DNA of 64,000 bases from Macrostomum lignano (lineage: Eukaryota): positions 186,001 through 250,000 of the forward strand of contig NIVC01001389.1 in assembly GCA_002269645.1 (NCBI GenBank). The letters are read 5' to 3'. Position numbers and translations under genes: made by a program. Below, in pieces: positions 29,110 through 60,051 of this stretch. Under the pieces are notes generated by a model. The model did not search any database. It had not been told where the DNA came from and was given only the letters and a program-made list of their open reading frames with translations. The first letter of the stretch is position 1, and each line of letters begins with the position of its first letter.

Positions 29110-29553
29110 AGCCTGGACTTGTGCGATAACGACCTGCTGCCGGCTCTTTTCGCCCAGCTGCCCCGCCTGCGCTGCCTCCGCCTCACTAACTGCAGCCGCC
29201 TGACCCGCCAGGCCTGAGCGAATCTGCGAGACCTGCAGAGACTCGCCGCCTCGCCGCTGCCCGACCTGCTCGAGCTCGTGGTTTACAATTGCAGCGATTC
29301 CAGCATCCAGCCTCACTGATGAGGCGGTGGCAGACCTGTGTGCCAGTCCGGTCGCCAGGGGCCTGCGGTGGCTCAGTCTGCACCCGTGCAACCAGCTGAC
29401 CGCCGCCTCTCTCTCCAGCATCGCCAGCGGCTGTCCGTGGCTGTCCGGGCTGTGCCTCTGGAAGTGCCGGCGTATCGGTCCGGCGGACCGCGATGCCATT
29501 AACTCGGCCTATGCGAACTGTGTCAGGGTAGTTCTGTCGCTCTCCTGCCCTGA
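29110..29553 (+). pseudogene. Orphan last exon of an F-box/LRR paralog
   Basis: DLLPALFAQLPRLRCLRL... with TGG>TGA near 29215 and a 7-nt duplication frameshift near 29305. No F-box exon seen upstream. Confidence 0.85.
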
Positions 29554-30360
29554 TTGAGCGCTTCGGCACCGCCAAAGTATGAATATAGACATTCATTCTC
29601 TTCAATGAATGCTTACTGCCATTTTTAACGGAAATTTTGTGTTTATTGACTTCGATCCCGCCACAGGGAACCACTAATGACGCTTTGCAAGTTGACCTCG
29701 GTTTGTAAGCGGCGCACACTAACACAACAGTGCCAGTTTTGTAGAAGCTGTAGGCCTTAGATTCAACTTTTTATATTTTATTTTTTATTATTAGCTGTAC
29801 TCTGTCTGTTTATTGTGACATTTCACACGTTTTGTGATAAACCTTTACTTTTATTCAGTGTTCTACTAGCACGTTACTCGTGCAGAAGTTATTGTTTGTT
29901 TTACTCTTGATCTATTTTTGGCCTTAAAGTCTCTAAATTAGTACCAACCAATGAAAATGCGACTCCAGTCTCAGCCAATAGGAAGCAGTGGTGTACAAAA
30001 TAACCATCTCCCAGTTCGATAGAATGAAAAATTTGTATATCTGGATAATAAACAAACACTTGCTAAGCCAAGCAGGAAGCTTCGCTCACTTTCCTCGCCC
30101 TCTTGCCGTCGCTCGCTCTTGCACATTTACCGGGTCGGACTGTTGGTAGCAGAACCTCAGAGTGAACCCAAAATACTCACAAGCTTGGAAGCTTCTTACC
30201 TGGAGTGCCTTCTTATATTACATTTTTTTGTCATTCAACGCGACTAAGATTGAAATTAGCAAACACAGCGGACTGTGAGTAACTAGCCATATGATTGGAT
30301 CGTCAGAAAAAGTTATTTGAATCCAATATTTCACTCCACTTGTATGCATTTCAATTGCAG

Positions 30361-32829
30361 CACCTTCAGCTCAACGAAGGAGACTGCTTTATCGAGTGGC
30401 TGCCGGATGAGCTGCTCACGCAGATCCTGTCCGAGTTGGACCAGACCAGCCTCGGCCGGTGCGCTCAGCTGAGCAGGCGCTGGCAGCGACTCGCCACGCA
30501 GCCGCGGCTGTGGCGCAAAATCCGCATCGGCTGCCGGAACCCCGGCATGACCCCCGGTCTGGCGCTCTGCCTGTCCGCCCAGCTGGCCGGCGCAGTGCTG
30601 GAGCTGCACGCGGACCGGCTGGCTGCTGACGAGCTCGTGCACCTGCTCAGCGGCTCGCCCGACTTGCAGAGCCTCACCATTGATGGCATCAGCGGCCCTC
30701 CCGGATCCGAGAGCCCGCTGGTGACGCTCAGTCGCTGCTGCCGCCGCCTACGGAGCCTCCGCCTGCTCCGCTGCGGCGGCCTGCTGTCAGCGCACTCGCT
30801 GGCGCAGCTGGGGGCCGGCTGTCCGCATCTGGCGCACCTGGCTCTGGATTTCTCTTCCTGCGCCAGCCTCGGCGGCTCCAGGGAAGAGTTCTCAACGCTG
30901 GCCTGCGGCCTGGAGTCCCTAAGCTTGGCCTTCTTCAGTGCTCATGCTGAGCAGACAGTTGAGCACCTGGCCTTGACAATACCCGTCTGCAAGCGCTTGA
31001 GCCGCTTGAGCATCGGCTGCAGCCGAGAGTCAGGTAAGTCTCTCACTGAGGTGGGAGCATCTGTCCAAATGGAAACCCCAGCATCGCCAGGCGGCTTATT
31101 ACGGCTGTCGGTGGGCTTGCAAACGGAAGACACCGCGATTTTGTTAGACAATTTCTCTTCCCAGTGGCTCAGAGAGCTGCGCAACCAGCTGGGATAGGGG
31201 CCACCTAGCTGGAAGCCGCACGAGTCCCTCCTGATGCTGCGAGAGCTCACAGTTGTGAAGAGAAAAAGGGACTCGCCCTCTTTGCAGACAGAACTTTGGT
31301 CGCCAAACAGTCCACGGTCCACTGGCCACAACACTAAATTTAACTGAATTTTACTGCACGGTCACACGAGAGCGAGAGAGACTGAGAGCGGAAAGTCCCG
31401 CGCTTTAAATAGCAGAGGGGAAGAGGGAGGAAACGGGCAAGCCAGCGGACAGCCGCGACACCCCACCTCGCTGGCCAGCCAATCACGTGCCGCCGCGGCA
31501 CAGGGCAGAGAAGAAACTGAGGGCTGGGCTGGGCGCAAGACCAACTAGGGAGAGGAGTGGCCAGGCCAGAGAGAGGCTCAAGCCCCCAAACCCCGGTCTG
31601 ACCCTCGGGCCAACCAGAGCGAGGTAGAAAGGAAGGGAGCAAGTAGACACAGCATACCACAACAACATTTAGTTATTCGAATAAGCGCCCAAATATAGCC
31701 AAGGTAGCGCAAAACACAGAAATGGCTTCTCTTGTTAACTTATTTTGATGAACGGAATTTACAGCGGCCCTTGAATTTTGTGCAGAGCAGCCTGATTGTC
31801 CATATCCGGCCCTGTTCACTCCGCAGTGCTGCTGCAGCTGCTGCTCCGCATGCCCCGCCTGGCCGACCTGACGGTCCGCGAGCTGCGCTTCACCGACAAG
31901 CTGGCCGGTCAGCTGGTCGCTGCAGCTGAACGAAGCGGTGGCTTCGAAAGTCTCGACTTTCGCAGCTGCCAGCAGTTGACCGAGCGCGGCCTGGTCGCCC
32001 TGCTCAGCGCCTGTCCGAGCCTGCGGCGTCTCCGCCTGTCCGACTGCCGGGCCTTAGGCGGCGTTGGCTACCGCCTAGCTGCTGCCCGCCTGCCGCCCGG
32101 CCTCGAGCAGCTGCGGCTCACAGGTTGGGCCTGGCCTGGCCTGGTCGAGGCGGACCTGGCGCTGCCGCTGCCGAGAGGACTCCGCGAGCTGGAGCTGCTG
32201 CTCAACCAGCAGGGCTCGCCCGCCGGCCTCTGCGGGCTGGGGCTGCGAGCTGGCCTGGCCGGCTGCCGGGGTAAGAGGCTAATCTGATTAAGCAGCACCT
32301 GAGGCGCAGGTGGATTTCAGAGACAGGAAACAAGTCAGATTCACCCACCCACCAACCGCCAGAGCTGACCAAGCTGACGCTGGACTTGTGCCACAGCGAC
32401 CTGCTGCCGGCTCTGCTGACCCAGCTGCCCCGCCTGCGCTGTCTTCGCCTCACTGACTGCCGCCGTCTGACCTACCAGGCCTGGGGTCTCACCGCCTCCT
32501 CGCCTGACCTGCACGAACTAATGCTGCTGCAGTGGTCCAGCCTCACTGATGAGGCGGTGGCCGACCTATGCGCCAGTCCGGTCGCCAGGGGCCTGCGACG
32601 TCTGTGCCTGTCGCCCTGCCTTCAGCTGACTCGCGCCTCTCTCGCCAGCATCGCCAGCAGCTGCCCATGGCTGACCCGCCTGACCCTCAACGGCTGCCGT
32701 CGAATTTCCCAAGCGGATCTGCAGTTGGCGCAGCCGGCATTCGAGCAGCGGGTTGAGCTCATCATCGGCAGAGAGGCAGAAGCGGCTGCCCAGAAGCTGC
32801 AGTTTTTATCTGATACGGAACTCGATTGA
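30361..32829 (+). CDS. F-box/LRR gene 1 (exons about 30361-31033, 31827-32270, 32363-32829; true start not resolved)
   Basis: F-box LPDELLTQILSELDQTSLGRCAQLSRRW; cysteine-containing LRRs (LxxLxLxxCxxLT); phase-1 GT-AG introns join in frame. Confidence 0.82.
31142..31667 (-). mobile_element. Dispersed repeat, probable solo LTR, in intron 1 of F-box gene 1; related copy at about 56980-57379
   Basis: The two copies align over more than 300 bp. The minus strand starts TGTTG and carries TATTTAAA and a CCAAT box. No TSD confirmed and the left boundary is uncertain. Confidence 0.55.
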
Positions 32830-34325
32830 GGATTGGGAGAGAAGGCCTGCCCGCCAACCCGAGTTTGAGCACGCATTTTTATAAAAATACACTTCGCAAA
32901 TAGCAATGGTGTTTGATCGCTCTGCGCAACACATTTTTTGCAAGCTCTTTCTAATTCGCGTTTCTTATTTACAAACCTCACTACTGACAGTAGAGCTGAG
33001 GCGAGAAAATATCTATCCAAGATTCAACACTATCGCTTTGCTCTCTGGAGCTTCAGGTCCTCAGAACTCTTGTAGGCGAGCTGAAAATTACAGAGCAGAG
33101 AGGGCAAAGTGCAAGGTTGGCAAATGCATTTGATCCATGATAACTCGCATGATAACTCTGAACACTGTCCGCAGCCTTGAGACCGTTCGAAGGTCCTGTT
33201 TGACATCCGCCCGAACGATGGCGCAAATGGAAGCGACCGGTTGCGACGGTCCGAGACGGAGGTCTTGTCGACTGGAGGGCTTGGATCCAGAACCCGCTGT
33301 GAGTGAGCCGGAAATTCAGCTGTCTGATTTGATTGATGTGCTGACAAGTGCAGGAAACGGCGATGCTGGTTCGAGATTTTAGTTGACGGGGTGTACTGAG
33401 CGATTTCTAGACCTTAAAAAAGCTTGTCAATTTTTTTGAGAAAAATCGTGCCGCACACGAATCGTGGATTGGGCCCGTCGCGACCCTATGACCGAATTTT
33501 TATTCGATTATAAGCATCGACCCCGATTAGGTAGATCTGCGGACTGCCCCTACAACTGACTGCACCTTCCTTCAGCCTATCCTGAACAGTTCCTCGGCAG
33601 TCCCGGAAATCCCCTCGTCGAGGCCGGACTGCCCGATCGAGAAACTTCCTGTTGAGCTGCTCACGCAGATCCTGTCCGAGCTGGACCAGACCAGCCTCGG
33701 CCGGTGCGCTCAGCTGAGCAGGCGCTGGCATTCACCGTCCATACGAAGCTACATCGGACCAGACTGGCCCCCTCATCCACCGACTGTCCGTGTGGCTGTC
33801 CGGAAACCTGGTGGAGCTGCACGCCAGCCGTTTGGCAGCTTTTGACTTTGTGCCCCTGCTGAGCTCCTCGCCCAAGCTGGAAAGCGTCACTTTAACATCG
33901 GTCAATCCAGCCTTTTGTGTGGAGAACCCATTGGAGACCCTGGGCCGCTGTTGTCTCGCTCCGCTTGCAGAGCCTCCGCCTGATCAAGTCTCAGTCGCTG
34001 CTCTCTGATCACTCGCTTGAGAAGCTTCAGACCGGCTGTCCGCGCCTGTGGCAGCTGCAGCTGGGCTTCTACTTCCTGCCGAAATTGTTTTCCATGGAGC
34101 GCATCGCCGCCCTGGTCAGTGGCCTGAGGTGTCTCAGTCTGCGCTTTAACTTTCCATTGCGTGCCTGGAGCGTTTTCAGCCGCTTAGGCCCAGCCTGAGC
34201 GTTGCTACTCAGTGTCACAAGGACAAAAGTAGTGAGCAGTTCCTTTTCCGCATATTCTGACTCGATCCGAAAGTAAAAGTGTTGAAGAAGCATCGAAACA
34301 ACCAATGAGATTTTTTACTGTATTT

Positions 34326-34628
34326 GGGGGCCGCAGCCTAGTGCTCTTGCGCGGTGCTCTGATGTGGCAGCGGTCCAGGCTCCTTGGGGCTAAATTGGAA
34401 TCTCGGCTTGGCTCTGCTCATATAATTAACTTCCTTGAGGGCCACCCCCAATGCCACATTGAAGTGTACATGCCTAACGATAAATAAAGTTAGAGCCACT
34501 GTACACTCCTGTGTGTCTGATCCTTGCGCTTGTGTCGGCGGAATGGGCAGCAATGCCTCTCGCCGGTTGTGTGACAATTCCGCTTAAAGTGCGCCAGGGT
34601 GAACACAACCACCTGCCTCTAACTAAAA
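34326..34628 (+). mobile_element. tRNA-derived SINE, copy 1 (internally deleted)
   Basis: Aligns with the copies at 36821 and 45684; A-rich 3' end. Confidence 0.75.
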
Positions 34629-34754
34629 GAGGATTATTGACTAGTTGAAACTCCAAGGGTTCGATTCTTTAGCCAACCACATTAATTGGCGTTGATGCTT
34701 CAATGCTACGAGTAAGGGCTCGTGCGATTCACACATCAGAGTCTCCATCGTACT

Positions 34755-35630
34755 CCAGACTCCCAGATCTGCAGCTCACGCTATCCCAACTCTCTGACTC
34801 CCAGATCTGCAGCTCACGCCATCCCAACTCTCTGACTCCCAGACCTGCAGCTCACGCTATCCCAACTCTCTGACTCCCAGACCTGCAGCTCACGCTATCC
34901 CAACTCTCTGACTCCCAGATCTGCAGCTCACGCTATCCCAACTCTCTGACTCCCAGACCTGCAGCTCACGCTATCCCAACTCTCTGACTCCCAGACCTGC
35001 AGCTCACGCTATCCCAACTCTCTGACTCCCAGACCTGCAGCTCACGCTATCCCAACTCTCTGACTCCCAGATCTGCAGCTCACGCTATCCCAACTCTCTG
35101 ACTCCCAGACCTGCAGCTCACGCTATCCCAACTCTCTGACTCCCAGACCTGCAGCTCACGCTATCCCAACTCTCTGACTCCCAGATCTGCAGACCTCACG
35201 CTATCCCAACTCTCTGACTCCCAGACCTGCAGCTCACGCTATCCCAACTCTCTGACTCCCAGACCTGCAGCTCACGCTATCCCAACTCTCTGACTCCCAG
35301 ATCTGCAGACCTCACGCCATCCCAACTCTCTGACTCCCAGACCTGCAGCTCACGCTATCCCAACTCTCTGACTCCCAGACCTGCAGCTCACGCTATCCCA
35401 ACTCTCTGACTCCCAGATCTGCAGCTCACGCTATCCCAACTCTCTGACTCCCAGACCTGCAGCTCACGCTATCCCAACTCTCTGACTCCCAGATCTGCAG
35501 ACCTCACGCTATCCCAACTCTCTGACTCCCAGATCTGCAGACCTCACGCTATCCCAACTCTCTGACTCCCAGATCTGCAGACCTCACGCTATCCCAACTC
35601 TCTGACTCCCAGATCTGCAGCTCACGCTTC
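34755..35630. repeat. 38/40-bp minisatellite (CTCCCAGACCTGCAGCTCACGCTATCCCAACTCTCTGA)n
   Basis: About 22 tandem copies. Confidence 0.95.
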
Positions 35631-35689
35631 ACTGGCCTGCCCGTGAGACTGAATTCAGGGGATCACCTTGTGACTAGTTATGGAACCCA

Positions 35690-36040
35690 CCAAAATGAGT
35701 GCCTGAGGCACCAAACTAAGTGTCTGCAACACCAAAATGAGTGTCTGCAACACCAAAATGAGTGTCTGCAGCACCAAACTGAGTGTCTGCAACACCAAAA
35801 TGAGTGCCTGCGTCACCAAAATGAGTGCCTGCAGCACCAAAATGAGTGCCTGCGGCGCCACAATGAGTGCCTGAGGCGCCACAATGAGTGCCTGGGGCGC
35901 CACAATGAGTGCCTGGGGCGCCACAATGAGTGCCTTAGGCGCCACAATGAGTTCCTGAGGCGCCACAACGAGTGCCTGCGGCGCCACAATGAGTGCCTGA
36001 GGCGCCACAATGAGTGCCTGAGGCGCCACAATGAGTGCTG
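35690..36040. repeat. 21-bp minisatellite (CACCAAAATGAGTGCCTGCAG to CGCCACAATGAGTGCCTGAGG gradient)
   Basis: Tandem units whose consensus shifts from the 5' half to the 3' half. Confidence 0.93.
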
Positions 36041-36820
36041 ACAACACCGATGCCCAAAAAATGTAGGAATTCAGCCATGTTAGAAGAATTTTTGGCTTTG
36101 CCTCCCACCATAAAATCTATGGCGACACCCTGGCTGACTTGGAAAATTGTGCCGGACTGTCACACTACAGAGCTGAGCTACCTGAATTTGGACGGGAGTC
36201 ACGATGACCTGCTGCCGGCTCTGCTCTCCGGGCTGCCCCGCCTGCGCTGCCTTCGCCTCACCGACTGCAGCCGCCTGAACCGCCAGGCCTGGGCGAATCT
36301 GCGACGTCTGCAAAGCCTCGACGCCTCGCCACTGCCTGACCTGCACGAGTTCCAGGCTTACAAGTGCAGCGAGTCCAGCCTCACTGATAAGGGGGTGGCC
36401 GATCTGTGCGGCAGTCCGGTCGCCAGGGGCCTGCGGCGGCTCAGCCTGCAGCCGTGCCGCCAGCTGACTGCCGCCGCCGCCCTCTCCAGCATCCCCAGCG
36501 GCTGCCCGCACCTGTCGGAGCTGATTCGGCACAGCTGCAGTGCCGCCCTACTGAGCGCAGCCTCATCAAGTCAGCTTATGAGAACTCAGTGCTTTTCAAA
36601 GCCGATTGATTCCTTGGTGTAATATTACCTTTTTAAAATAAAAGACGTTAAAATTGAATTTGCTTCTGGCTAACGGAATCGGTTAACTCCAAGTTTGTTA
36701 TTTCTCAGAGAATCTGCTAGTCTTGCTTCTTAGTGAGTCGCTTCACGACCCCCGGTACGGGTATGGCACGGTTTGGTGTGGAGTTGTGATCTTTATAGAT
36801 TAATTTCACACCCGGGGGTT

Positions 36821-37193
36821 GGGCCGCAGACCAGTGGTCCGTCGCGGCGCTCTGATAGGCCAGCGGCCCAGGCTCGATTCCAAGTGCAGTTACTTTAACC
36901 TGGGGCTAAAGTAAAGCCCAGGCTCTGCTCATACAATTAACTTCCTTGAAGGCCACCCCCCAATGCCACAGTAAAGTGTATATGCCTAACGATAAATAAA
37001 GTTAGTTAGGGCCGCTGTACACTCCTGTGTGAGTGTGTGCCTGTGCGTATGACTGCGTACGTAATCCTTGCACTTGTGTGCCTGCTCAGGGGAGTCGTCG
37101 GAATGGGCAGAAATGCCTCTCGTCGGTTCTGTGACAATGTCGCTTAAAGTGTGCCAGACTGAACACAACCCCCATTGCCTCTAATTAAAAAAA
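36821..37193 (+). mobile_element. tRNA-derived SINE, copy 2
   Basis: B-box-like GGCTCGATTCC, shared body, CCTCTAATTAAAAAAA tail. Confidence 0.8.
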
Positions 37194-37584
37194 TGCTCCC
37201 ACGCATCTATCGGACTTTTTAAAAGTGCAGCTGGTGGTTTGTCCGTCAAGAGAGCTACTGAATGCAGCCGCAATCCCAGCCATTACCCAAGGGACGAAAT
37301 AGAGGGGAATGCGAGCGAGTGGGGCATGCACCGTGACCCCAGTCCCAGTCTATCCCTGTACAGCAGGCACACTGCACCGGGCTGATAGGGTCCCACAAGG
37401 GAAACCAATGCTAGTCCAGGCTATTGGTGCTTTTCAGAGTCAAAAATAGCTTGAACAGGTCGGCTGCAAACTCTGATCTCTATTGGCAGCACTTTTACTG
37501 AGTGAAAGCTCCATGCTTCATCATCATCAACATGAGCAGCAGCAGCTGGATGTCAGCCAGGTGTCCTTGCAACAAAGCAACTCC

Positions 37585-39928
37585 ATGAGCCTCCAGCCGC
37601 CACCTGCCGCAGGCTCCTCCTGCGTAAGTCCCCAGCTCCCCAGCCAAGATGCTTCCGAATTAATGATGCACATCTTGCAACTTTCATTCGCTACAGAGCC
37701 TCATCAGCAATATCGAGCAGCTGCCAACAGAGCTGCTCACGCAGATCCTGTCCGAGCTGGACCAGACCAGCCTCGGCCGGTGCGCTCAGCTGAGCAGGTT
37801 TTGGCTGGAGCTCACCTCTCAGCCGCAGCTGTGGCGCAAAATTCGCATTGACAGCCGCACCGCGGATCCCGAACTGGCGCAGCGCATCTGCGACTGGCCG
37901 GGTGGCCGCGTGCGCGAGATTTCGGCGGTCAGACTGGCAGCTAAGCACCGGCTGCCCCTGCTGCTGGCCGCATCCGCCAGTCTGACCAGCCTCTGCCTCA
38001 AGGAGATGCAGGGCGACCTCGTATTGAAGGAGGCCGGCCGCAGCTGCCAAAATCTGCGCGAGCTGCGTCTCGAATGCTGCAATGAGATGCTGTCCTTCGA
38101 CTCGGTGAGCGGCCTGCTGACCGGCTGTCCGAGCCTCTCGCTGCTGCAGTACACTGGCAGCCTGTCCGATCTGTTCGCACCGTCTGATGAGCACCGGGTG
38201 GCCCCTCTGTTCCACTCGCTGGTGAGCCGACTCTCCAGTCTCAAACTGCACCTGCTGATGACGGAGAGCCTGCCGCCGCAGTGGTTCGCTGCTCTGCCCG
38301 AGTGCCCCCGGCTCACCAGCCTCTACGTGAGCATTGCGGACTGGAGAGGTGAGCACCTGATCTCTACCTGTCCGGAGTCGGACAGGTTTGACTTCAGCGA
38401 TCTCTGCCTGTCCAGAGTCGGACAGGTTTGACTTCAGCGATCTCTGCCTGTCCAGAGTCGGACAGGTTTGACTTCAGCGATCTCTGCCTGCCCAGAGTCG
38501 GACAGGTTTGACTTCAGCGATCTCTGCCTGTCCGGAGTCGGACAGGTTTGACTTTAGCCTGACTGACTGATACTCAATGCTCATCCCTTTCAAATGACTG
38601 CTTTTCAGGCCTGGCGCACCTGCCCAGTAAAATGCCGAACCTGACCGACCTGTCCGTTCTTACCTCTCAACCTGCATCTCAGGCAAACCTGCAGCTGGGC
38701 AGGCTGCCTCATCTTCAGCGAGTGAAGATCTGCGACTTCTCCTTTCAGTCGTGGAGCTTGGATGCCATCCTGTCGGTGCTGCGAGGCGTCCGCGAGCTTC
38801 GGAGCTTCATGTTGGATGGCTGCGTGCACCTGACCGGCCAGCAGTACCGGCAGGTGGTGCGGGCCCTGTCAGCCCGCCTCACAGACCTTCGCTTTGGTGG
38901 CTGCTTCAGAAACAGAGTCGCTGAGGTCGACCTGCAGGAGCCGCTGCCACCTGGCCTGAGGCGGCTGCAAGTTGATGGATTCAAATGGGGAACGTCTGGA
39001 GTGCAGTTTGCTAGTGCTCTGGCCAGCTGCTCAGGTGAGCGGGTCTGTTGCTGGTGTGGGCTGGTGGCTGCTCAGGTGAGCGGGTCTGTTGCTGGTGTGG
39101 GCTGGTGGCTGCTCAGGTGAGCGGGTCTGTTGCTGGTGTGGGCTGGTGGCTGCTCAGGTGTGCGGGTCTGTTGCTGGTGTGGGCTTGTGGCTGCTCAGGT
39201 GAGCGGGTCTGTTGCTGGTGTGGGCTGGTGGCTGCTCAGGTGAGCGGGTCTGTTGCTGGTGTGGGCTGGTGGCTGCTCAGGTGAGCGGGTCTGTTGCTGG
39301 TGTGGGCTGGTGGCTGCTCAGGTGAGCGGGTCTGTTGCTGGTGTGGGCTGGTGGCTGCTCAGGTGAGCATTCAGACCACTGCACAGAGGCGGTCGGGTCA
39401 ATGTCGAGTTGCTAACGCTACAAGCGTAACACGAGTTTATTGTAACAAATTTTCAAATCAGGCCTGACGCACCTGGCCTTGGCGGTCTGCAGCGACGACC
39501 TGCTGCCGGCTCTGCTCGCCCAGCTGCCCCGCCTGCGCTGCCTCTACATCCACGACTGCAGCCGCCTGACCCGTCAGGCCTGGGTGAACCTGCTAAACTT
39601 GTGGAGCCTCGCAGTTTCCCTGCCTGACCTGCAGGAGTTTTCCGCTGTCAACTGCAGCGAGTCCAGCCTCACTGATGAGGCGGTGGCCAACCTGTGCGCC
39701 AGTCCGGTTGCCAGGGGCCTGCGGCGGCTCAACCTGTCTCAGTGCCGCCAGCTGACCGCCGCTGCACTCGCCAGCATCGCCAGCGGCTGCCCCTGGCTTA
39801 CCCGCCTGGCTCTGAAGCCATTTCCTAAATTGGTCGAGTCGGAGCTTTCAGAATTTCGAGCATCCTTTGAGCAGTGCTTGGAGGTCAGGGAGTTCGGCCT
39901 CCATCCCGAGTGCCAGTGGGTTGGCTGA
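37585..39928 (+). CDS. F-box/LRR gene 3, apparently intact (exons 37585-37623, 37697-38348, 38609-39034, 39462-39928)
   Basis: ATG exon with GTAAGT donor; all introns GT-AG and frame-preserving; F-box followed by LRRs. Confidence 0.82.
38359..38556. repeat. 41-bp intronic repeat (GATCTCTGCCTGTCCAGAGTCGGACAGGTTTGACTTCAGC-like), 4-5 copies
   Basis: Starts about 10 bp after the donor; each unit contains CAG|GT. Confidence 0.9.
39025..39370. repeat. 41-bp junction repeat (GCTGCTCAG|GTGAGCGGGTCTGTTGCTGGTGTGGGCTGGTG)n, 9 donor-like sites
   Basis: The unit begins with the exon end and donor. The same unit occurs at 59215-59570. Confidence 0.95.
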
Positions 39929-44520: not shown

Positions 44521-44766
44521 AGTAAGTGACAGTATAAGTCAGAGCGAGAACTCTAAGCAAACTGGGTTTAAGAAAAGCTCCCTCCAGTGTTAGCAGCCAC
44601 TCCCATAGCCTTAGGAACTCCTCAGATTTTCGGTGCCTCCACAACGTACAGAGACAAATTCTCTATTAAAAGACTGTCGTCCAGATGAATATCAAGTTTG
44701 TCAGGTGTATTTTTGCTACTGACCAGTTTCAGAACTGAGAGACCTCGTGTGAGTCAATAAAAACAG

Positions 44767-46355: not shown

Positions 46356-46417
<62 letters not shown>

Positions 46418-49400: not shown

Positions 49401-50077
49401 CAAGCATCCAAGAACCTTGACATAATCAGGACTGTGATAGCGCAGTGCTCAGTGCTAGAAGAAAAATTCAGGAAAGCTAGTAGATCGTAGAACACCAGGT
49501 TCAAGTAAACCTCATACAATTCTCTACACTATATAAAACAAACTGTCTTCATTACATAATATGAACTGCTTCTACTAAATTCATCGATCTGAACAAATGT
49601 CAAGACATTACAGTTATAGGGTCTTGTAGATTGATTAAATCTAGATTATTTATTTCTTGTATTATACTAACTAAAGAACAAAATTAAAAGTATAGAATAA
49701 AATACTTTGCTATAAATATACAATTTAATAAGAATATAACTATACAGGAGAGGTTGTATTTGTAAGATACTATGACATGGTAGCAGCATTTTTTAACAAC
49801 AAAGTTTCTATCACATCATATAGCATAATGGCATGCATTACTAAATTATAGTCTATTTCCACTTTCACATTACACAGATCATAGGAAGAATGATAAATTC
49901 CAGGTTTCCCCTCCCACATTGGTGTATTTCCAGGTTTTTTCTTCTGTTTTGGGGCGCTTCCAGGTTTTTCCAGGTTTTTTTGCATTTCCAGGTTTTTCCA
50001 GGTTTTTCCTTGTTTTTCCAGGTCGCGGACACCCTGGATGATGATGATGATGATAATGATGATGATGATGATGCTGC

Positions 50078-50109
<32 letters not shown>

Positions 50110-50164
50110 CTAATGATGATGATGATAATGATGATGCTGATGATGATAATGATGATGATGATGC

Positions 50165-50199
<35 letters not shown>

Positions 50200-50277
50200 C
50201 TGATGATGATGATGATGATGCTGATGATGATGATGATGATGATGATGATGCTGATGATGATGATGATTATTATGATT

Positions 50278-50309
<32 letters not shown>

Positions 50310-51297
50310 AAGAATCTGTCGCAGCTAACTGTCATACATCGCTTGGCCGCTTGGCAACAAGTTTTGCTCCATCAGAGTTCCTCGGTGTTGCAGGTTTCGT
50401 TCGCATCCTGCGCTGCACTCCCAACCTGGTCTGCCTTAGGGCGACCGGCTACAATAGTCTGGACGATGCCGCTAATCTCCAGCTGCCAGCGCTGCCTCAT
50501 CTTCGCCGGTCTGACCTAATCTTTCATGAAGCGCGCGCTGAGACCACAATGCCTCTGATTCAGCGAGTCCCCGCGCTCAAAGTCTTGTCATTCTGCGGCA
50601 ACATGTCGGTCACCGACTACCAGCGCATCGCTCAGAACCTGCCAGCCAACCTGACCCACCTGGTGCTGTTTCGCTCCGAAACCGACTGGACTCAAGTGGA
50701 CAGCCTGCCGCCGCTGCCCGCCAGCCTGCGGTACCTGGTGCTCGAGACATGGGGTGTGGAAACGACACCACAGCTGATCGGCGCAATAACTGCCTGCTCA
50801 GGTGAGCTGCTCTCTTTTCCGCTCATTATAACAAAGAGCCATAATGTTTTAAAATGAGAGTATTGACTCACCCCAACCCAGCTCTAGAGCACGTGACTCT
50901 GGCCAGCAGTGCCACTGACGACCTGCTGCCGGCTCTGCTCTCCTGGCTGCCCCGCCTGCGCTGCCTTCGCCTCACCGACTGCCGCCGCCTGACCAGCCAG
51001 GCCTGGGCGAATCTGCGACACCTGCAGAGCCTCGCCGCCTCGCCGTTGCCCGACCTGCACGAGTTCCGGATTGAGAATTGCAGCGAGTCCAGCCTCACTG
51101 ATGAGGCGGTGACCGATCTGTGCGCCAGTCCGGTCGCCAGGGGCCTGCGGCGGCTCCAACTTCACTCGTGCAACCAGCTGACCGCCGCCTCTCTCGCCAG
51201 CATCGCCAGCGGCTGCCCGTGGCTGTCAGAGCTGAAGCTGCTCGGCTCCCACCGGCTCATCAGACAGGCCGACCTGCAGGCCTTCCACTCTGCCTAA
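44767..51297 (+). CDS. F-box/LRR gene 5 (exons 44767-about 45393, about 50376-50801, 50882-51297); intron 1 swollen by nested elements; stop 20 codons earlier than gene 6
   Basis: F-box MEKILPDELL..., LRRs, phase-1 GT-AG junctions. TAA at 51295 where gene 6 has TAC. Confidence 0.75.
45684..46057 (-). mobile_element. tRNA-derived SINE, copy 3 (best preserved)
   Basis: Minus strand GGGGGCCG-TAGCCCAGCGG (A box)...GGCTCGATTCC (B box, 1 mismatch); 3' CCTCTAATAAAAAAA and poly(A). Confidence 0.88.
46455..50036 (-). mobile_element. hAT-like DNA transposon, 3582 bp
   Basis: Perfect 13-bp TIRs CAGGGTGTCCGCG; subterminal TTCCAGGTTT repeats; 8-bp flanks GATGATAT/GATGATGA inside the microsatellite (TSD ambiguous). 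Confidence 0.9.
46814..49423 (-). CDS. Spliced hAT-like transposase, about 774 aa (exons 49423-48896, 48796-48152, about 48047-47835, 47752-46814)
   Basis: BED-like finger C..C...H....H; CYDE (D1), SMDGPNVN (D2), CGLH, RWLEN, HGNATVESGFS (E). Phase-0 introns give an open frame; the exon-3 acceptor is the least certain. Confidence 0.8.
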
Positions 51298-52471
51298 CAG
51301 CGCTGCATCTCAGTAGAGCTGAGCGACTCTCCCAGCCTGTTAGAGTTTCATTTTTGAAGGCTCCCTCCAAGTTTCTTGGGCACATCGGACATTTGACTGA
51401 CATTGGATGCGGATGTAATGAAAATGAAATGTTTAAACTTTCTGTTGGTTGATGTGCGTTTAGACTATTCAATATTTTCTACAGCTAATGGTTGAAAATG
51501 TGTCTTTTCTACAACTGGAAACTCGAAACATGTTATTTTTTTAGTTTTCTTGTTTATTTCTTTAAAAATGAATAAAAATTCCGCTGTTGTTTATGCAGAC
51601 TTTTGAATCTTTAATTATTTCTGTAGCAAGTTGAACTTCCGTGTTTTTAAAGCTTTTAACGATGTTATATTTCTAAGAAATCTTTGATGCGCAGAAAGCA
51701 GAATTTGGACCAAGTTTATACGAATGAATTTTTAGGTTTCTCCTAACTTTTTTGAATAAAAAATAAAAAGGTAGCTATTATTCAATGTTTATTCGAATCT
51801 TTCGATTATTTAATCCTATTAGCATTGCCTAATTTCTTTACAGCGACACGCATACATAATCATGAAAGCTTCTGATCGTGCTTTCTGAAACAAGTCACAT
51901 ATTATACGATAATGCGACGTATATTTGAGAGCATATACGGATAAATAGTTTTTTTGTATAGTGGACTAGCCATTTAACCCCTTTCGGGTGGCTCCTGGGG
52001 TGCCTACGAGCTACAGCCCGCAACTGACGGAGCTCAGAACTCAGCTATTCAGCGGGTTTTCCTGCTCAGCCGAGAGCCTTGCAGAGCGTGAAGTCGCTGT
52101 GGCTTTCAGACTGTTTTCATGCCAAAGAGACTGTGTTCTCGTTCTCCTAAAAGTGTTGATTATATTTCTGCTAACTCTTTTGCATCCATATTAGTATTTA
52201 GTAGTGTCAGAGCTACAAGTCTTTGTTATGACCGAATGGAATATTTTTTGCAGCTTGAAATAATTTCTAAACGTAGCTGAAGTCTCCGATCACTGAAGAG
52301 CTTCAGTTGTCAGAAATCAGTGCAAATTCACAAATGCAAACAGACAGCAGGAGCGGCTGAACCTTCAAAGTTTAGCAGGCGAACACTTTTCATGGCTTCT
52401 TAAATGTTTCCAATTATGTTATTAGCATTATGATGGAAATGTTATAATGTTATACAATAAACAACTTCCAG

Positions 52472-55400
52472 CCCCACATTGAGCAGCTGCCAGAGGAGCT
52501 GCTCACGCAGATCCTGTCCGAGCTGGACCAGACCAGCCTCGGCCGGTGCGCTCAGCTGAGCAGGCGCTGGCGGCGGCTCGCGACGCAGCCGCGGCTGTGG
52601 CGCAAAATCCGCATTGACGGCCGCACCGCAGATGCCGAGCTGATGGAGCGGCTCAGAGACTGGCTGGGCGGCAGCGTGCGGGAGATCTCCGCCTGCGGAC
52701 TGACAGCCGAGCACCGGCTGCCACTGCTGCTGGCCGCATCCGCCAGCCTCACCTGCCTCAGCCTGAGCTGTCTCAGTCAAGCTGATGTCCTTGTGACCGA
52801 GGTGGCCCGCAACTGCCGCAGCCTTCAAAGCCTGCGCCTTCTTGACTGCCCGGCCGCGCTGTCAGCTGACTCGCTGAGCGGCCTGCTGTCCGGCTGTCTC
52901 AGCCTGTCGCTGCTGGAGGTCGGCGACAATCGCGATGAGGCCGACGTTGACTGGCTGGGAGATCAGCGGGTGCGCCGGCTCTTCCGCGAGCTGGCGGGCT
53001 GCCTCTCCAGCCTGTCCGCGCACTTCAACGGCGCTGCTGGCCTTCTGAGCGGCCTGCCTGCGTGCCCGCGACTTACCAGCCTGTCTGTTGTTGTCTCCCT
53101 GTGGCCAGGTGAGAACCAGGCGCACTTTATCTGCGTGACGCCATACAGTCAGCCTTGACGTAGGGCTTAAAAACCTAGAGACCTTAACTTCGCAGCTGTA
53201 TCAATAAGATTTTATTGACTTACATGCAGAAAATGAATATCGTAGCAGTTTACGTCGCTTTACTTATGTGCATTTCATTACTGACAGTGACACCAACCCC
53301 AATAAATTTGGAATAGAATTCGTGCAAGAATTAACAAAACATTCTCTGACTTTTGCAGACAAATCGACTATATTGTTGGAAACAGGGAAAAACTGTCTTT
53401 TCAGTCTGTGAAGGCACATTGTTACGCTGAGGCAAAGATACTATATTGCTGAGTCAATTAGCAAGCTGTCTTACGCCTGCAAGCTTGGGCTTCTAAACTT
53501 ATCAAAGTCATTTCAGCTTATGTATTCTTCTTTGCCACTGAACTGAAAGTAGAAAGCTGTTTTACTAAGTAATAGCTCGTATGCCTGAGTGGCCTATCTA
53601 GTTTTATTATGTATGTACATTGGCCAGTCCACTGAAATGTACATGGCCGCTTTAGACTGGAACTCCAAGAAAGGCAATAAAAATTGGGGTGGGGGTGGGG
53701 GTGTGGAAAGGCGCGGTTTCAGCAGGGGGGGTAAGAGCCAATAAATGAGCCTTGGCTTTAAAAATACATTAAAATGCTTCTGTTTAACTTACTACTGAAC
53801 TGAAAGTAGCTTACATGCAAATGTGCTGAGTGGCCCATCTTAGATATTCTAGCATCTGTGGGCTGAGGATTCCACTGGCGCTGTCAAGGCTTTTTTGCAA
53901 ACCAAAGTACCAGCTATAGAGTCCTGCATGGTTTTGAGTCTATGTTGACCTTCCCACCTGACTTGGCCGCAGCCGCAGGGCGGACATTACATTTAAGCAA
54001 GATTTACCTGTCCGTGCCTGACCAGGCTGTTCAGGAACCTCAGTTTTACGAGCGTATTTCAACGAGGAACCGAATATATAGTAAAAACTGCAAGCCAGAT
54101 GCAGCACCAAAAAAGTTTCCGTAGGGGTGAATCCCCACTTTGGTAGATCTGCTGCTAACCGGTCTTTCCTTTCTCAAGAGCTGCCAGGGCTGCTCAGCTG
54201 CGCTCCGAACCTGACCGACCTGACGGCGCGCGTCTTGGAGCCGTCCGACTCGCCACCAGGCCGCCCGCAGCTGCCGGCGCTGCCCCGCCTGACCCGCCTG
54301 AGACTCGCCGATGAGAGCTGCTGGACAGCCGAGTCCGTCCTGCAACTGCTGGCCGGCTGCCCGCGACTCGGCAGTCTCAGCCTGCACTGCTGGTGGCAGG
54401 CGACCGGCCCGGACTATCGGCACATTGTGCGGGCCCTGCCGCCCGGTCTGGCCGAGTTGAGCCTCTGCGGCTTCGGCTGGGCCGGCGTGGACGCAGCGGA
54501 CCTGGCCGAGCCGCTGGCACCCAGCCTGCGCCGACTGCAGCTCTGCGGGCCCGGCAGCTGCGTCAGCGGAGCCCGAGTGATGGAGGCTCTGGCCAGCTGC
54601 TCGGGTAATTGCTGCACTGAAATGCATTATTCCACGAGGTATGTTGGGTGTCCTTGGTCTTCTGGCCTCTCAATAGTATGGCTCTTTAATAATTTCGGTT
54701 ATCAATGCGAGAGCCAAATAGCTGAGACGGCGGATTCAACTGACTTTTCCTGATGCTGGCAATCGCGTGATGTTAACTTACAGACCGTTGTACTTGATGT
54801 CCGCAATCTAAATGATGTTGTCTCACAGTTGACTACACTTGCCCTAATGGCCGGATGTGCAACCCGACAGCTCAGCCGCAGCTATTGCGCAGCACATCGG
54901 AAGGCTGCGTACGGCTGTTCAGTCCAAGGACTGGGGGGGACCACCACACACCCTCAATTACCCCAGCTAATGCTGGCAGAGTTGAATGTCTTGCTCAAGG
55001 ACACAAGCTTCTTGTTTGGTTTCAACAGCGGTTTATATAGGTTTTCAGTCTTTCGCATTGAAGGATAATCTAGATGGTACATGACTGCTTTTCATTGGCG
55101 GATTCGAATATTCTGCATCTTGTGCCTTGGCCTTGGATGTACTTTGAATTGAGTGCTGCTGTTAGCATGCGGATCGTAATCATGATTTTGCTTCTTCCCT
55201 TGCAAACAGGCCTGACCCACCTGACCCTGGATGTGAGCCATGACGACCTGCTGCCGGCTCTGCTCTCCTGGCTGCCCCGCCTGCGCTGCCTCCGCCTCAC
55301 CGACTGCAGCCGTCTGACCCGCCAGGTCTGGGCGAATCTGCGAGACCTGCAGAGCCTCGCCGCCTCGCCGCTGCCGGACCTACACGAGTTCCGGGTTGAC

Positions 55401-55682
55401 AACTGCATGGAGTCCCGCCTCACTGATGAGGCGGTGACCGATCTGTGCGGCAGTCCGGTCGCCAGGGGCCTGCGGAGACTGAGCCTGCACCCGTGCAACC
55501 AGCTGACCGCCGCCTCTCTCGCCAGCATCGCCAGCGGCTGCCCGTGGCTGTCAGAGCTGAAGCTCTTCGGCTCCCACCGGCTCATCGGGCAGGCCGACCT
55601 GCAGGCCTTCCACTCTGCCTACCAGCGCTGCATCTCAGTAGAGCTGAGCGGCTCTCCCAGCGTGCAGGAGTTCTATTTTTAA
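52472..55682 (+). CDS. F-box/LRR gene 6 (exons 52472-53108, 54179-54604, 55210-55682; upstream start exon not resolved)
   Basis: F-box and LRRs; GT-AG phase-1 introns in frame. Confidence 0.82.
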
Positions 55683-55709
55683 AGACTCCCCAAGTCTCTT
55701 GGGAGCATT

Positions 55710-56430
55710 GGACTGACATTGGACACTGGACAATGGACACTGGACAATGGACACTGGACATTGGACACTGGACAATGGAAACTGGACAATGGACACTGGC
55801 CAATGGACACTGGACATTGGACACTAGATATTTAAGACACTGGATATTTTAGACACTGGATATTTTAGACACTGGATATTTTAGACACTGGATATTTTAG
55901 ACACTGGATATTGGACATTGGACATAGGACATTGGACATTGGACATTGGACATAGGACATTGGACACTGGATATTGGACACTGGATATTGGCACTGGACA
56001 TTGGACATTGGACACTGGATATTGGGCATTGGACATATGACATTGGACATTGGACACTGGATATTGGACACTGGATATTGGACACTGGATATTGGACACT
56101 GGATATTGGACACTGGACATTGGACATTGGACATTGGACACTGGACATTGGACATTGGACATTTGACACTGGATATTGGACACTGGATATTGGACACTGG
56201 ACAATGGACACTGGACAGTGGACACTGGACAATGGACACTGGACATTGGACACTGGACATTGGACACTAGACATTGGACACTGGACATTGGACAGTGGAA
56301 ATTGGACCTGGATATTTTAGACACTGGATATTGGACATAGGACATATAACATAGGACATTGGACACTGGACATAGGACATAGGACATTGGACACTGGACA
56401 TTGGACATTGGACATAGGAAATTGGACAAA
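55710..56430. repeat. 7-bp-based minisatellite (TGGACAC/TGGACAT/TGGATAT)n in the 3' region of gene 6
   Basis: Directly visible. Confidence 0.95.
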
Positions 56431-58053
56431 GGATGTTAATCTGTTGTATTTTATATAGCTGTGTAAACTGAAAGTTTCATTTGTATGTTTTCTGTTGGAG
56501 CTGAACAATTAGAAACTTTGGAGTGGTGCAGTCAATATATGCCGCTTCCTGATAAGCAAAGCGGGCACAGAGGCTCCCCTGGCCAGAGACTAAGAAGAGA
56601 GCTGCTTTAATAGCTACGGTACTTAATACTATAAGAAAGTTTGCATCACTCTACGCTCGCAACGAGTGTTCTCTATTCCAGCTAACCAGCATGTCTGCTG
56701 TACAGGTGAGAGAATTGATTTCAATTAAGCATGAAGTTACATGCTTTTGTAAAAACATTAGAAAACTTGAAATCTTTCGGTCCGCTCCAACAATAATAGT
56801 CCCGGAGGAAGCAATTCCGAATATCTAGTGAACCAACCGTGTCCCATGAGGGTTGAGGACTCGGACGTCCTTCAGATTTTCTTCTTACTTCTGGCGCATA
56901 TCTCCTCCTATAGTTGACGTGGCTCTTCGGTGTGTGAAGCGTGTATGGAGACTACGAGCTACATGGCCGTTGCATTTCCCGGGGTAGAGCTCGTCCAACT
57001 GGGAGACGCCCAGGTCCCGCCTGATTCTGCGATATTTGCAAACCGAACCTGGTTGCAGCACAAGTACGCAACAGTCAGCGGTCCACTGGCAACAGCACTG
57101 CATTAAAATGACTCGTACTGCACGGTCGCACGAGAGCCAGAGAGACTAAGAGCGGGAAGGCCCGCGCTTTAAATAGCAAAGGGGAGAGAGGGGAGGGAGG
57201 CGGGGGATAGTCAGCCACGACACCCCCCCTTTGCCGGCCAGCCAATCACGAGGCGCCGCGGCACAGGGCAGAGAAGAAACTGGGGCTGAGAGGTAAGAAA
57301 CAAGCCCCCAAACCCCGATCTGACCCATCCGGGCCAGCCAGAGCAAGGGAGAGAGAGGAGGAGGCAGCACAACACAACAGATGTGATCCGTCAGCGTAGC
57401 TGTAAACCTCTCAAGACAGTCGAGGTGCTGAAAAGCCTTCGGGTTTTCTTTGAAGCGCTCCCTGACTTGTCCACAGATCGAGAGGCTCTCCGACGCGCTG
57501 CTCACGCGGATTCTGTCCGAGCTAGACCACCAATGCCTCGGCCGGTGTGCTCAGCTGAGCAGGCGCTGGCGGCGGCTCGCCGTGCAGCCGCAGCTGTGGC
57601 GCTCAGTGCCAGTCCGGATCCGAGGCCGGAACCTGCCGTCCCGCCTGCCCGAGTCGCTGCTGGAGCTGCAGGTGGAGGTCGGTGCGGGCGCCAAGCTGTC
57701 GCCTTTGCTCAGATGGCTGCCGGTTCTACAGCGCCTCTCCATCGCTGACTGCAGCTTCGCAGACTCGCAGAATCCGCTGATCGCTTTGGGTCGGAGCTGC
57801 CCGGACCTGCGCGAGCTCCGCCTTCAGTTCTGCCGGAACGCGCTGACAGCGGCCTCGTTGAGCAGCCTGGTAGCCGGCTGTCCGAGACTGTCCCTGCGCC
57901 GACGATGATGACGAAGTATTCGCGCTTTTTTTCCAGCTGGTGCCGCGCCTCTCCAGCCTCGATGTGGTGCATCAAAGTGCACAGTTCGTTTCATCGGCCT
58001 GGTTCGCTCGGTTCAAAGATCTGCTGCCCGAGTGCCCGCGGCTCGCCAGCCTC

Positions 58054-58680
58054 TCCATCTTCTCCTGGGACTGGACCCGTGAGTCAGATCTCCTGGGACT
58101 GGACCCGTGAGTCAGATCTCCTGGGACTGGACCCGTGAGTCAGATCTCCTGGGACTGGACCCGTGAGTCAGATCTCCTGGGACTGGACCCGTGAGTCAGA
58201 TCTTACCCTGGGACTGGACCCGTGAGTCAGATCTTCTCCTGGGACTGGACCCGTGAGTCAGATCTCCTGGGACTGGACCCGTGAGTCAGATCTCCTGGGA
58301 CTGGACCCGTGAGTCAGATCTCCTGGGACTGGACCCGTGAGTCAGATCTTCTCCTGGGACTGGACCCGTGAGTCAGATCTCCTGGGACTGGACCCGTGAG
58401 TCAGATCTTCTCCTGGGACTGGACCCGTGAGTCAGATCTTCTCCTGGGACTGGACCCGTGAGTCAGATCTTACCCTGGGACTGGACCCGTGAGTCAGATC
58501 TTGTTCTGGGACTGGACCCGTGAGTCAGATCTTCTCCTGGGACTGGACCCGTGAGTCAGATCTTGTCCTGGGACTGAACCTGTGAGTCAGATCTTCTCCT
58601 GGGACTGGACCCGTGAGTCAGATGTTACCCTGGGACTGGACTCGTGAGTCAAATCTTACCCTGGGGCCGGACCCGTTACT
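58054..58680. repeat. 28/31-bp junction repeat (ATC[TTC]TCCTGGGACTGGACCC|GTGAGTCAG)n, about 21 copies
   Basis: The first unit is the exon end plus the GTGAGT donor. Confidence 0.96.
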
Positions 58681-59214
58681 TATATCTTTTTATCACACAC
58701 TCTGGGCGCCTTTTGATGGGGCGCCAGAGTGCGGATAATGCTGGAAGACCAATTTTCACTGATATACTCGGTTTTCCAATTTGAGCTGAGAAAATTTCTG
58801 ATTACAGAGTTTCTGCAGCTGCTGAGCAAGACGCCGAACCTGAAGGACCTCACAGTCAACTGCATTGGGTCGCTGGAAGAAAGATTTCATCAAAAGAAGT
58901 TTCAGCTGCCTTCCCTCCGTAGCATTCGCGTCTGCGACCTCCACCGCAACCGCTGGAGCTCCGAGTCCGTGCTGGCTCTGTTGAGCTGCTTCCCGGAGAT
59001 CTGCAGCATCGGCCTCAGCCTGAATATGGCTGATGGGGAGCTTCAGCAGCTGCTCCGAGCGCTGCCTGGCAACCTGGAGGAGCTTCAGGTTAGCGTGCAG
59101 AGGTACGAGAAGCAGGTGGTGGACAGCCTCTTTGACAAGCTGCCAGCCTGCCTGTGGTCTCTCCAGCTGGAAGGCTTCATGGACTGCGGAATGCAGCTGG
59201 TTGAAGCCTTGAGT

Positions 59215-59570
59215 GGCTGCTCAGGTGAGCGGGTCTGGCGCTGGTGTGGGCTGGTGGCTGCTCAGGTGAGCGGGTCTGTTGCTGATGTGGACTGGTGGCT
59301 GCTCAGGTGAGCGGCTCTGTTGCTGGTGTGGGCTGGTGGCTGCTCAGGTGAGCGGGTCTGTTGCTGGTGTGGGCTGGTGGCTGCTCAGGTGAGCGGGTCT
59401 GTTGCTGCCTGGTGTGGGCTGGTGGCTGCTCAGGTGAGCGGGTCTGTTGCTGGTGTGAGCTGGTGACTGCTCAGGTGAGCGGGTCTGTTGCTGGTGTGGG
59501 CTGGTGGCTGCTCAGGTGAGCGGGTCTGCAGCTGGTGTGGGCTGGTGGCTGCTCAGGTGAGCGGGTCTGG
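59215..59570. repeat. 41-bp junction repeat making up essentially the whole last intron of gene 7
   Basis: Nine CAG|GTGAG copies; the same unit as at 39025-39370. Confidence 0.95.
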
Positions 59571-60051
59571 CGCTGGATGTCTCTAGCGACAACCTGCTGC
59601 CGGCTCTGCTCTCCCGGCTGCCCCGCCTGCGCTGCCTTCACCTCACCGGCAGCAGCCGCCTGACCCGCCAGGCCTGGGCGAACCTGCGCGCTTGGCCAGC
59701 CGCGACCCCGCCTGACTTGCAGGAGCTCGCGCTGCTTGGCTGCGCCTTCCGTGGCGTCACGGACGACGCCGTGGCCGACCTGAGCGCCAGTCCGATTGCC
59801 AGAGGCCTGCGGCGGCTCGCTCTGTGCAAAAGCTTCTTCTTGACCTCCGCCGCTCTCGCCAGCCTCTCCAGCGGCTGCCCCTGGCTGCCCAGCCTGTGTC
59901 TGCGCGGCCTGCGCAGCCTCGAGGCCTCCGATCTGCGAGCCTTCCGCTCCGGCTTCGAGCATCAGGTGAACATCGAGCTGGAGAACTGGCCTGTCTGGGG
60001 GTCCGAGCCCTGGCTTGCAAGCCGGGTGAGTCCCTGATTTCTGTAGCTCTG

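Follow-up and report, generated by a model that had tools for sequence, protein, structure and literature searches.

Birth-and-death evolution with probable segmental gene conversion in a lineage-specific F-box/LRR gene array of Macrostomum lignano

Introduction

How can neighbouring copies of one gene be identical down to their synonymous sites in one short block, and share as little as 35% of their DNA in the exon that follows? The question is raised by an array of genes for F-box and leucine-rich repeat (LRR) proteins in the flatworm Macrostomum lignano. The array occupies 29.1-60.0 kb of a stretch of 64,000 nucleotides (contig NIVC01001389.1, positions 186,001 to 250,000 of the forward strand, assembly GCA_002269645.1), hereafter called the window, to which all coordinates refer unless another locus is named. 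It consists of seven F-box/LRR units, g1 to g7, and one orphan last exon, g0, arranged head-to-tail and all on the + strand. The answer reached here is that the array was probably shaped by birth-and-death together with segmental gene conversion in a lineage-specific family of FBXL type, which is a known evolutionary mode. This judgement of concerted evolution is drawn from M. lignano paralogs of one genome. On present evidence, no new recognition or immune system is opened by the array.

Its value lies elsewhere. The locus documents an undescribed, Macrostomum-restricted expansion of FBXL ubiquitin-ligase adaptors, and offers, in a flatworm model, what would be a clean, small case of segmental gene conversion that touches coding DNA, non-coding DNA, and pseudogenes alike. 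In the recently duplicated genome of M. lignano it could be used to test how recombination and conversion act, and its genes could make up a candidate list for the functions of SCF (Skp1-Cullin-F-box) ligases in an animal whose SKP1 is needed for spermatogenesis.

Architecture of the Array

In a typical unit the F-box exon measures ~630 nt, the middle exon ~420 nt, and the last exon ~460 nt, and the two introns between them are both phase 1. The F-box exon either has a short 5′ exon ahead of it or carries an acceptor directly before the ATG. These models were built from frame-keeping GT-AG sites, together with the junctions of three annotated proteins (P0001, P0007, and P0009). Throughout the array the exons are GC-rich (55-62% GC) while the introns are AT-richer and filled with repeats. 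Five units read through (g1, g3, g4, g5, and g6), so that of the seven F-box genes plus orphan exon in the original prediction the layout stands, but only five of the seven look like intact genes.

The most uniform part of the array is a 69-nt F-box core running from GAGCTG to CTGAGCAGG. It opens with the 12-mer GAGCTGCTCACG, present as six exact copies and one with a single mismatch, all on the + strand (30409, 33654, 37730, 40379, 44788, 52496, and 57495); these seven sites compare with 0.68 expected in shuffled sequence, and none of 100 shuffles got to seven. When aligned, the core is 100% identical across units 2 to 6, differs in unit 1 by one synonymous change (CTG>TTG), and differs in unit 7 at eight positions, which confirms the identity at synonymous sites that had been claimed for it. 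Self-comparison places this core in an F-box block of ~130-450 nt, found in seven copies and beginning 18 nt 5′ of the core. At the other end of the units, self-blastn defines a last-exon block of ~340 nt in eight copies, which begin at 29112, 32360, 36167, 39451, 42530, 50887, 55200, and 59567.

The last exon had been described as invariant and the intervening LRRs as hard to align, and both descriptions need to be divided. The protein encoded by the last exon is indeed conserved, but its DNA is 72-89% identical and is not invariant at synonymous sites either (see below). The middle exon is indeed divergent in its DNA, at 35-65% identity, but at the protein level it aligns end to end and retains the LRR scaffold.

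With middles that are merely 35-65% identical, the copies are not haplotigs, a possibility on which the original prediction had made itself depend. M. lignano has undergone a recent whole-genome duplication and its assemblies are repeat-rich, so that collapsed or duplicated haplotigs, or homeologs of a polyploid genome, might have been mistaken for an array, and database proteins do differ by 1-5% from the window genes. Yet the low identity extends over most of the length of the copies, their introns differ in size and contents, and another assembly has three of the units in its own, independent annotation with identical splice junctions. Haplotigs were accordingly rejected on divergence and intron differences, and an assembly artefact of any of these kinds is hardly credible.

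A Macrostomum-Specific Family of F-box/LRR Proteins

The proteins belong to the F-box/LRR class, as had been proposed. An N-terminal F-box motif of ~45 aa is conserved in the alignment of g1 and g3-g7, and in g4 (residues 2-46) it is recognized by PF12937 (F-box-like) at 56.4 bits against a cut-off of 24.3 (E = 2.5e-15) and by PF00646 at 40.9 bits against a cut-off of 20.5. The Pfam LRR matches remain under their own cut-offs. The repeats are seen in the AlphaFold2 (AF2) model of g4, built from an 11-member family alignment (pLDDT 86, pTM 0.82), in which the F-box is followed by ~17 strand-helix LRRs. The top Foldseek matches of this model are FBXL2-SKP1, COI1-ASK1, and TIR1-ASK1, each with a probability of 1.00, and D3 was matched as well; FBXL2 is also the best sequence match in the PDB (E = 4.8e-10). 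The proteins are predicted SCF substrate receptors, which would bind Skp1. A single related functional finding came to light, namely that M. lignano has a SKP1 and needs it for spermatogenesis (PMC9740662).

The family appears to be confined to one lineage. All 14 matches in a protein search are M. lignano “F-box domain-containing proteins,” and three of them are the window units g1, g3, and g5 themselves at 95-99%. A profile search against 1.84 billion representatives returned about a dozen further M. lignano clusters first, and below them giant LRR proteins of a generic kind, together with FBXL2-like proteins from other animals; among the ten matches named, the nearest relative from outside Macrostomum comes from Sycon ciliatum and is annotated as FBXL2-like. 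The known family comprises ~15-20 clusters at 50% identity, and the family-level matches named all belong to M. lignano. Its members sit on several contigs, partly in tandem again (the locus L001 has two). The literature library that was searched has nothing relevant to an expansion of F-box genes in Macrostomum or to conversion between M. lignano genes, and the family is a Macrostomum-lineage-specific, previously undescribed group of FBXL-type F-box/LRR genes. One paralogous locus, L004:10001-13928 (P0008, P0012), has a linker-histone H1/H5 domain (PF00538) annotated ahead of the F-box/LRR body.

Synonymous Divergence Along the Gene

Divergence was expressed as Nei-Gojobori (NG86) proportions of synonymous (pS) and non-synonymous (pN) differences, given as the mean of the 15 pairs among six window proteins (g1 and g3-g7). 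In the codons ahead of the core, pS is 0.61. It falls to 0.08 in the 23-codon core over all pairs, and to 0.00 among g3-g6 (18 synonymous sites), then rises to 0.19 in the remaining 3′ part of the F-box. The middle reaches a pS of 0.54 and a pN of 0.47, values which lie near saturation and depend on the alignment, and in the last exon the two are 0.39 and 0.27. Synonymous divergence (dS) is therefore not uniform along the gene, as the original prediction had required of it. In a sliding profile pS follows pN, and three pS troughs stand out: the F-box, the segment LPALLS.LPRLRCLRLTDCSRLTRQ, and the segment SLTDEAV.DLC.SPVARGL. The two last-exon troughs correspond to near-invariant DNA blocks in 12 last-exon copies, those of other contigs included.

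Could such a profile arise with no recombination at all, from purifying selection on the protein and GC-biased codon usage alone? That pS follows pN is what this would lead one to expect, and the GC content of third codon positions (GC3) is high throughout (0.79-0.93). However, the codon usage of the family predicts only 11.3 of 23 identical core codons, and the probability that all 23 are identical is 10^-7.8 per pair, which rules out codon bias as the source of the synonymous identity of the core. The core even retains minor codons such as AGG (7%), ACG (18%), and GCT (19%). Among codons whose amino acid is invariant, synonymous variants occur at 23 of 39 in the middle and at 26 of 60 in the last exon, that is, at 43-59% of such codons, and at 1 of 23 in the core (49/99 elsewhere vs 1/23; Fisher p = 3e-5). 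Moreover, identity between copies runs on into 3′ non-coding DNA and intronic repeats, and a perfect core survives in the pseudogene g2. An origin of the end similarity without exchange is thus very improbable.

Sequence Exchange Between Copies

The clearest traces of exchange are mosaic genes. The unit g6 is nearest to g4 at its 5′ end and nearest to g5 at its 3′ end, with a middle that is 34-60% identical to either. The first tract (40361-40645, + strand, with its partner at 52478-52762) joins g4 and g6 at 97.5% identity over ~285 nt, before an abrupt drop to ~60-70%. The second, which may be converted or chimeric, joins g5 and g6 (50911-51410, + strand, with its partner at 55237-55725) at ~92-93% over ~500 nt, and overruns the g5 stop codon by ~110 nt, so that it includes non-coding DNA. 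In windows of 40 codons, the identity of g4 and g6 is 97-98% for the first ~100 codons and 55-60% after, and that of g5 and g6 is 88-97% for the last ~120 codons and 34-55% in the middle. At base level the edges are abrupt (40645/52762 for g4/g6, 50911/55237 for g5/g6). A permutation run test on shared polymorphic sites gives a global p < 0.0005 for the pairs g4-g6, g5-g6, and g4-g5 (0 of 2000 permutations), and p = 0.014 for g3-g4 and g3-g6.

The reach of perfect identity from the core also differs by partner, being 69 nt for g3, 76 nt for g2, ~79 nt for the paralog at L001, and ~285 nt for g4/g6; in g1, g4, g5, and g6 identity extends to ~130 nt with few differences. In g2 the perfect 76-nt stretch gives way, immediately past a 4-nt deletion, to ~45% identity. 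In the introns, 41-nt minisatellites agree at 95-98% between g3, g7, and a paralog on contig NIVC01003377.1, against 72-80% for the exons beside them. Taken together, the mosaics, the run test, the partner-specific reach, the perfect core in a pseudogene, and the intronic minisatellites show an exchange of sequence that is blind to coding status. The process, as far as its footprints allow one to say, would be gene conversion or unequal crossing-over, and the claim that conversion homogenises the ends is upheld by the sharp-edged mosaics and the run test. Since conversion needs pre-existing identity to start, it would reinforce the blocks that are conserved already, and the pS troughs would fall where constraint on the protein is strongest.

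The course of events can be pictured as follows. Birth-and-death would have left five genes that look intact, two that have decayed, and a single exon as a relic. The paralogs would swap short-to-medium tracts (~70-500 nt) by gene conversion or unequal crossing-over, and these swaps may succeed mainly at the F-box helices, at the LPRLRCLRL block, and at the SLTDEAVADLCASPVARGLRRL block of the last exon. As swaps need identity that protein constraint has preserved, synonymous differences would be wiped out at just those blocks. The middle LRRs would be old duplicates in which recombination has ceased, and which diverge in a near-neutral manner with only the hydrophobic scaffold kept. In the resulting protein, the N-terminal F-box would dock on Skp1 and a solenoid of ~17 cysteine-containing LRRs would present the substrate.

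Several points weigh against this account. All copies except g4/g6 share one 5′ edge of the identical core. Outside the array, paralogs on at least one further contig (L001) have the identical core as well, and two reading-frame translations (P0015 and P0021) suggest that it is probably present at a third locus. A fixed block in dispersed genes could reflect selection on the nucleotide sequence itself. To these must be added the near-saturated and alignment-dependent NG86 values of the middle, already given.

The core and the two weaker islands of the last exon might then be functional nucleic-acid elements, selected at the level of RNA or DNA, for example a shared small-RNA target co-regulating the family or an exonic splicing enhancer near an acceptor. 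There is precedent, as miR482/2118 targets the P-loop codons of plant NLR genes. The core is present in at least seven paralogs (six exact, one with a synonymous change) of two subfamilies on at least two contigs, most copies share its 5′ edge, its minor codons are retained, and both the core and the first island lie ~20-130 nt from an acceptor. Against this, RNA folding is no better than in shuffles on either strand. The ends of the core resemble an inverted repeat, and a hairpin or pre-miRNA was considered and rejected (z = -0.97, +0.59, -1.39, and -0.56 vs shuffles). No Rfam family reaches its gathering score anywhere in the window. Antisense family exons as a source of double-stranded RNA were likewise sought by self-blastn in the window, and none turned up; inverted matches are limited to repeats in introns or between genes (34384-34628 and 36821-37192 vs 45696-46054). 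The 3′ ends of identity differ by pair, like those of conversion tracts. Finally, the perfect core persists in the decayed g2 and is missing from the intact L002, L003, and L004 as well as from the decayed g7. Selected nucleotide elements are therefore quite unlikely, and the specific version in which core and islands are selected at two or more loci, as a small-RNA target or as a homology block guiding recombination, is distinctly doubtful. Were it true, a selected block would permit control of family dosage, or modular reshuffling of the variable LRR middles; in the recombination-guiding case, the decayed copies and the donor-bearing minisatellites would be substrates of exchange.

Is the Binding Surface Diversified?

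The original prediction saw in the array a constant-cap/variable-core repertoire, diversified in its binding surface and possibly serving intracellular defence or the degradation of transposon proteins. Variability was mapped onto the secondary structure of the AF2 model. In the middle LRRs, the mean pairwise identity of non-core residues is 0.23 on strands (the concave face), 0.22 on helices, and 0.24 in loops, and exposed codons have a dN/dS of 0.64 on strands and 0.98 on helices, while loop codons have one of 0.79; an enrichment of variability on the concave surface is thus absent. Because strands, helices, and loops vary equally, the pattern looks like relaxed constraint on all but the hydrophobic scaffold, not like targeted diversification. 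The LRRs of the last exon behave differently, strand-exposed codons having a dN/dS of 0.84 vs 0.47 for helix-exposed ones, and an identity of 0.26 vs 0.56; this faster change on the strands is a hint at best. No class of codons has a dN/dS above 1, in a sample of six sequences near saturation from which episodic positive selection could escape.

What remains of the repertoire, then? The tandem family evolves fast within one lineage and has pseudogenes among its members; its constant Skp1 end and variable LRRs resemble the F-box expansions of nematodes and plants (C. elegans, PMC8120010); the last-exon strands outpace the helices; and the array is surrounded by retrotransposons. But the even spread of variability in the middle and the absence of any class above 1 tell against diversification of the binding surface, and the family is small. 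A tblastn search found no cassette-like LRR fragments, only complete three-part units and decayed copies. A repertoire with a constant frame and a variable surface, kept under diversifying selection for defence or for disposal of transposon proteins, is consequently unlikely, and the defensive or anti-transposon role itself is conjecture. Of the constant-cap/variable-core idea, the F-box/LRR identity and the gene conversion are retained, and the diversifying recognition system is given up.

Comparison with Known Systems

The closest structural relatives are of the FBXL2/FBXL20 type (6o60, FBXL2-SKP1), with which the array proteins share an N-terminal F-box leading straight into a CC-type LRR solenoid (C..LTD..L..L...C..L..L.L). 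Unlike these, they have only ~17% identity over the LRRs, no one-to-one ortholog, and a family that is expanded and tandem in Macrostomum only. The F-box expansions of nematodes and plants show the same tandem clusters, pseudogenes, conserved F-box, and fast substrate domain (PMC8120010, PMC3984280). The Macrostomum family, however, counts tens of genes and not hundreds, it uses LRRs and not FTH, FBA, or Kelch domains, and positive selection was not detected in the array with its six near-saturated sequences.

In the mode of its evolution, the array also resembles LRR receptor families with segmental gene conversion such as the vertebrate TLR1/6/10 genes; for the TLR1 gene family, duplication, gene conversion, positive selection, and co-evolution are reported (PMC3125219). 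There too, the conserved signalling end is kept alike by conversion, the LRR part used in recognition diverges, and the paralogs are mosaics with sharp edges. The differences are that a membrane receptor stands against a cytosolic E3 adaptor, and that in the array the exchange reaches the two ends of the gene and also involves pseudogenes and intronic minisatellites.

The likeness to the variable lymphocyte receptors (VLR) of lamprey and hagfish, which the original prediction had invoked for the layout, is superficial, consisting only of conserved terminal LRR-coding parts around a variable middle. A VLR gene is incomplete in the germline, is flanked by partial LRR cassettes, and is assembled somatically by copy choice. 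In the array, each unit is, or was, a complete and self-contained gene with its own introns, F-box, splice sites, terminal exon, and stop codon; there is no cassette bank, and with ~15-20 clusters the family is small. The comparison therefore fails.

Individual Units and Gene Models

The array opens with the degenerate orphan g0 (29110-29548, + strand), a last exon with an in-frame TGA followed by a frameshift, and 73-87% identical to the other last exons by self-blastn. Upstream of it, tblastn finds no F-box or middle exon of the family in 1-29110. The intact g1 (30391-32829, + strand; core 30409-30477) has exons at 30391-31033, 31827-32270, and 32363-32829, counted from its IExLP codon; an upstream 5′ exon is implied, its position not located. 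The annotated protein P0009 is g1, whose exons 2 and 3 it matches at 98.6-98.7% with the same junction.

A clear pseudogene follows, g2 (33636-36622, + strand; core 33654-33722), in which identity runs through 33729 and is then broken by the 4-nt deletion. What is left of its first exon lies in three frames up to ~34195, with further frameshifts; the middle exon is absent, with minisatellites (34758-36038) in its place, and the last exon (36150-36622) has a shifted C-terminus. The intact g3 (37483-39928, + strand; core 37730-37798) has four exons (37483-37623, 37697-38348, 38609-39034, and 39462-39928) and corresponds to P0001, with a 95-99% match and the same junction of the 5′ exon.

The intact g4 (40361-42985, + strand; core 40379-40447) has only two exons (40361-40979 and 42096-42985). 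It lacks intron 2, whose first five bases, GTGAG, stay in frame at 42529-42533, which is an imprecise genomic loss. The retained bases (window 42520-42545) add one Glu to the protein (CSG-E-LTHL). The loss may have come from the collapse of a donor-bearing minisatellite abutting exon 3, an arrangement still seen in g7.

Next comes g5 (44767-51297, + strand; core 44788-44856), which has three exons (44767-45394, 50394-50801, and 50882-51297) and a first intron of 5 kb. A TAC>TAA change at 51295-51297 makes its C-terminus ~22 aa shorter than that of g6. The protein P0007 is g5, with a 95% match and the same junction spanning the long intron 1. The intact mosaic g6 (52478-55682, + strand; core 52496-52564) has exons at 52478-53108, 54179-54604, and 55210-55682. 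The most divergent unit is g7 (57477-60037, + strand; core 57495-57563), with exons at 57477-58078, 58808-59224, and 59562-60037. It has a one-base frameshift near 57896 that leads to a stop at ~57903, and a poor exon-3 acceptor whose AG comes from a repeated GTGAG; it is probably a decaying pseudogene, though the frameshift could instead be an assembly indel.

The window's own genes were not located in the NCBI Mlig_3_7 annotation; UniProt models match g1, g3, and g5, and g4, g6, and g7 are unannotated. The gaps between units, all on the same strand, go down to ~430 nt (39928-40361; also 32829-33636), and in g5 (44760-44769) as well as at L001 an AG acceptor stands immediately 5′ of the ATG. 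Spliced-leader trans-splicing and operon-like transcription are both known in M. lignano, and the short same-strand gaps with AG before ATG would fit either of them.

Minisatellites, Insertions, and Surroundings

Minisatellites are exceptionally dense in this DNA, with periods of 7-41 nt, 5-100 copies, and 75-98% identity between units. Introns, the spaces between genes, and the DNA ahead of the array all contain them, and they generate many spurious long ORFs on both strands. The dense stretches are 34758-36038, 41383-41916, 43245-44528, and 55715-56428 in the array, and 398-1520, 1971-3382, 8007-8947, 14365-14829, and 16302-17259 upstream of it. Some are built from splice sites. The 41-nt unit, found in intron 2 of g3, of g7, and of a paralog on another contig, consists of an exon end with its 5′ splice site (GCTGCTCAG|GTGAGCGGGTCTGTTGCTGGTGTGGGCTGGTG). 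In g3 it is repeated 8.4 times (39026-39368, + strand), starting at the exon-2 donor, and every unit bears CAG|GTGAGC; this array is 95% identical to the one that fills g7 intron 2 completely (59213-59576, + strand), and it matches L003:10392-10946 at 96-98%. Intron 1 of g7 contains a 31-nt unit with ACCC|GTGAGT (58057-58676). Each of these four splice-site minisatellites presents 8-20 consensus donors in tandem.

Within intron 1 of g5, on the - strand, lie three long ORFs of 334, 225, and 225 aa (46814-49519), which stand outside the F-box/LRR family. They match no Pfam family and have one weak C2H2 zinc-finger match; flanked by long (ATG/GAT)n arrays (45476-46452 and 50037-50308), they probably represent a mobile element that inserted there, or else a nested gene.

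The array as a whole is set in transposon-rich DNA (10836-13393 and 13876-14319 on the - strand, 17743-21540 and 22209-22898 on the + strand, and 60065-63631 on the - strand). Nearby are two non-LTR retrotransposons with reverse transcriptase (RT) and RNase H, the downstream one with an endonuclease ORF too, a Gypsy-like element with protease, RT, RNase H, and integrase, and a mariner-type helix-turn-helix (HTH) fragment. One of the transposon insertions is adjoined by an annexin-repeat exon.

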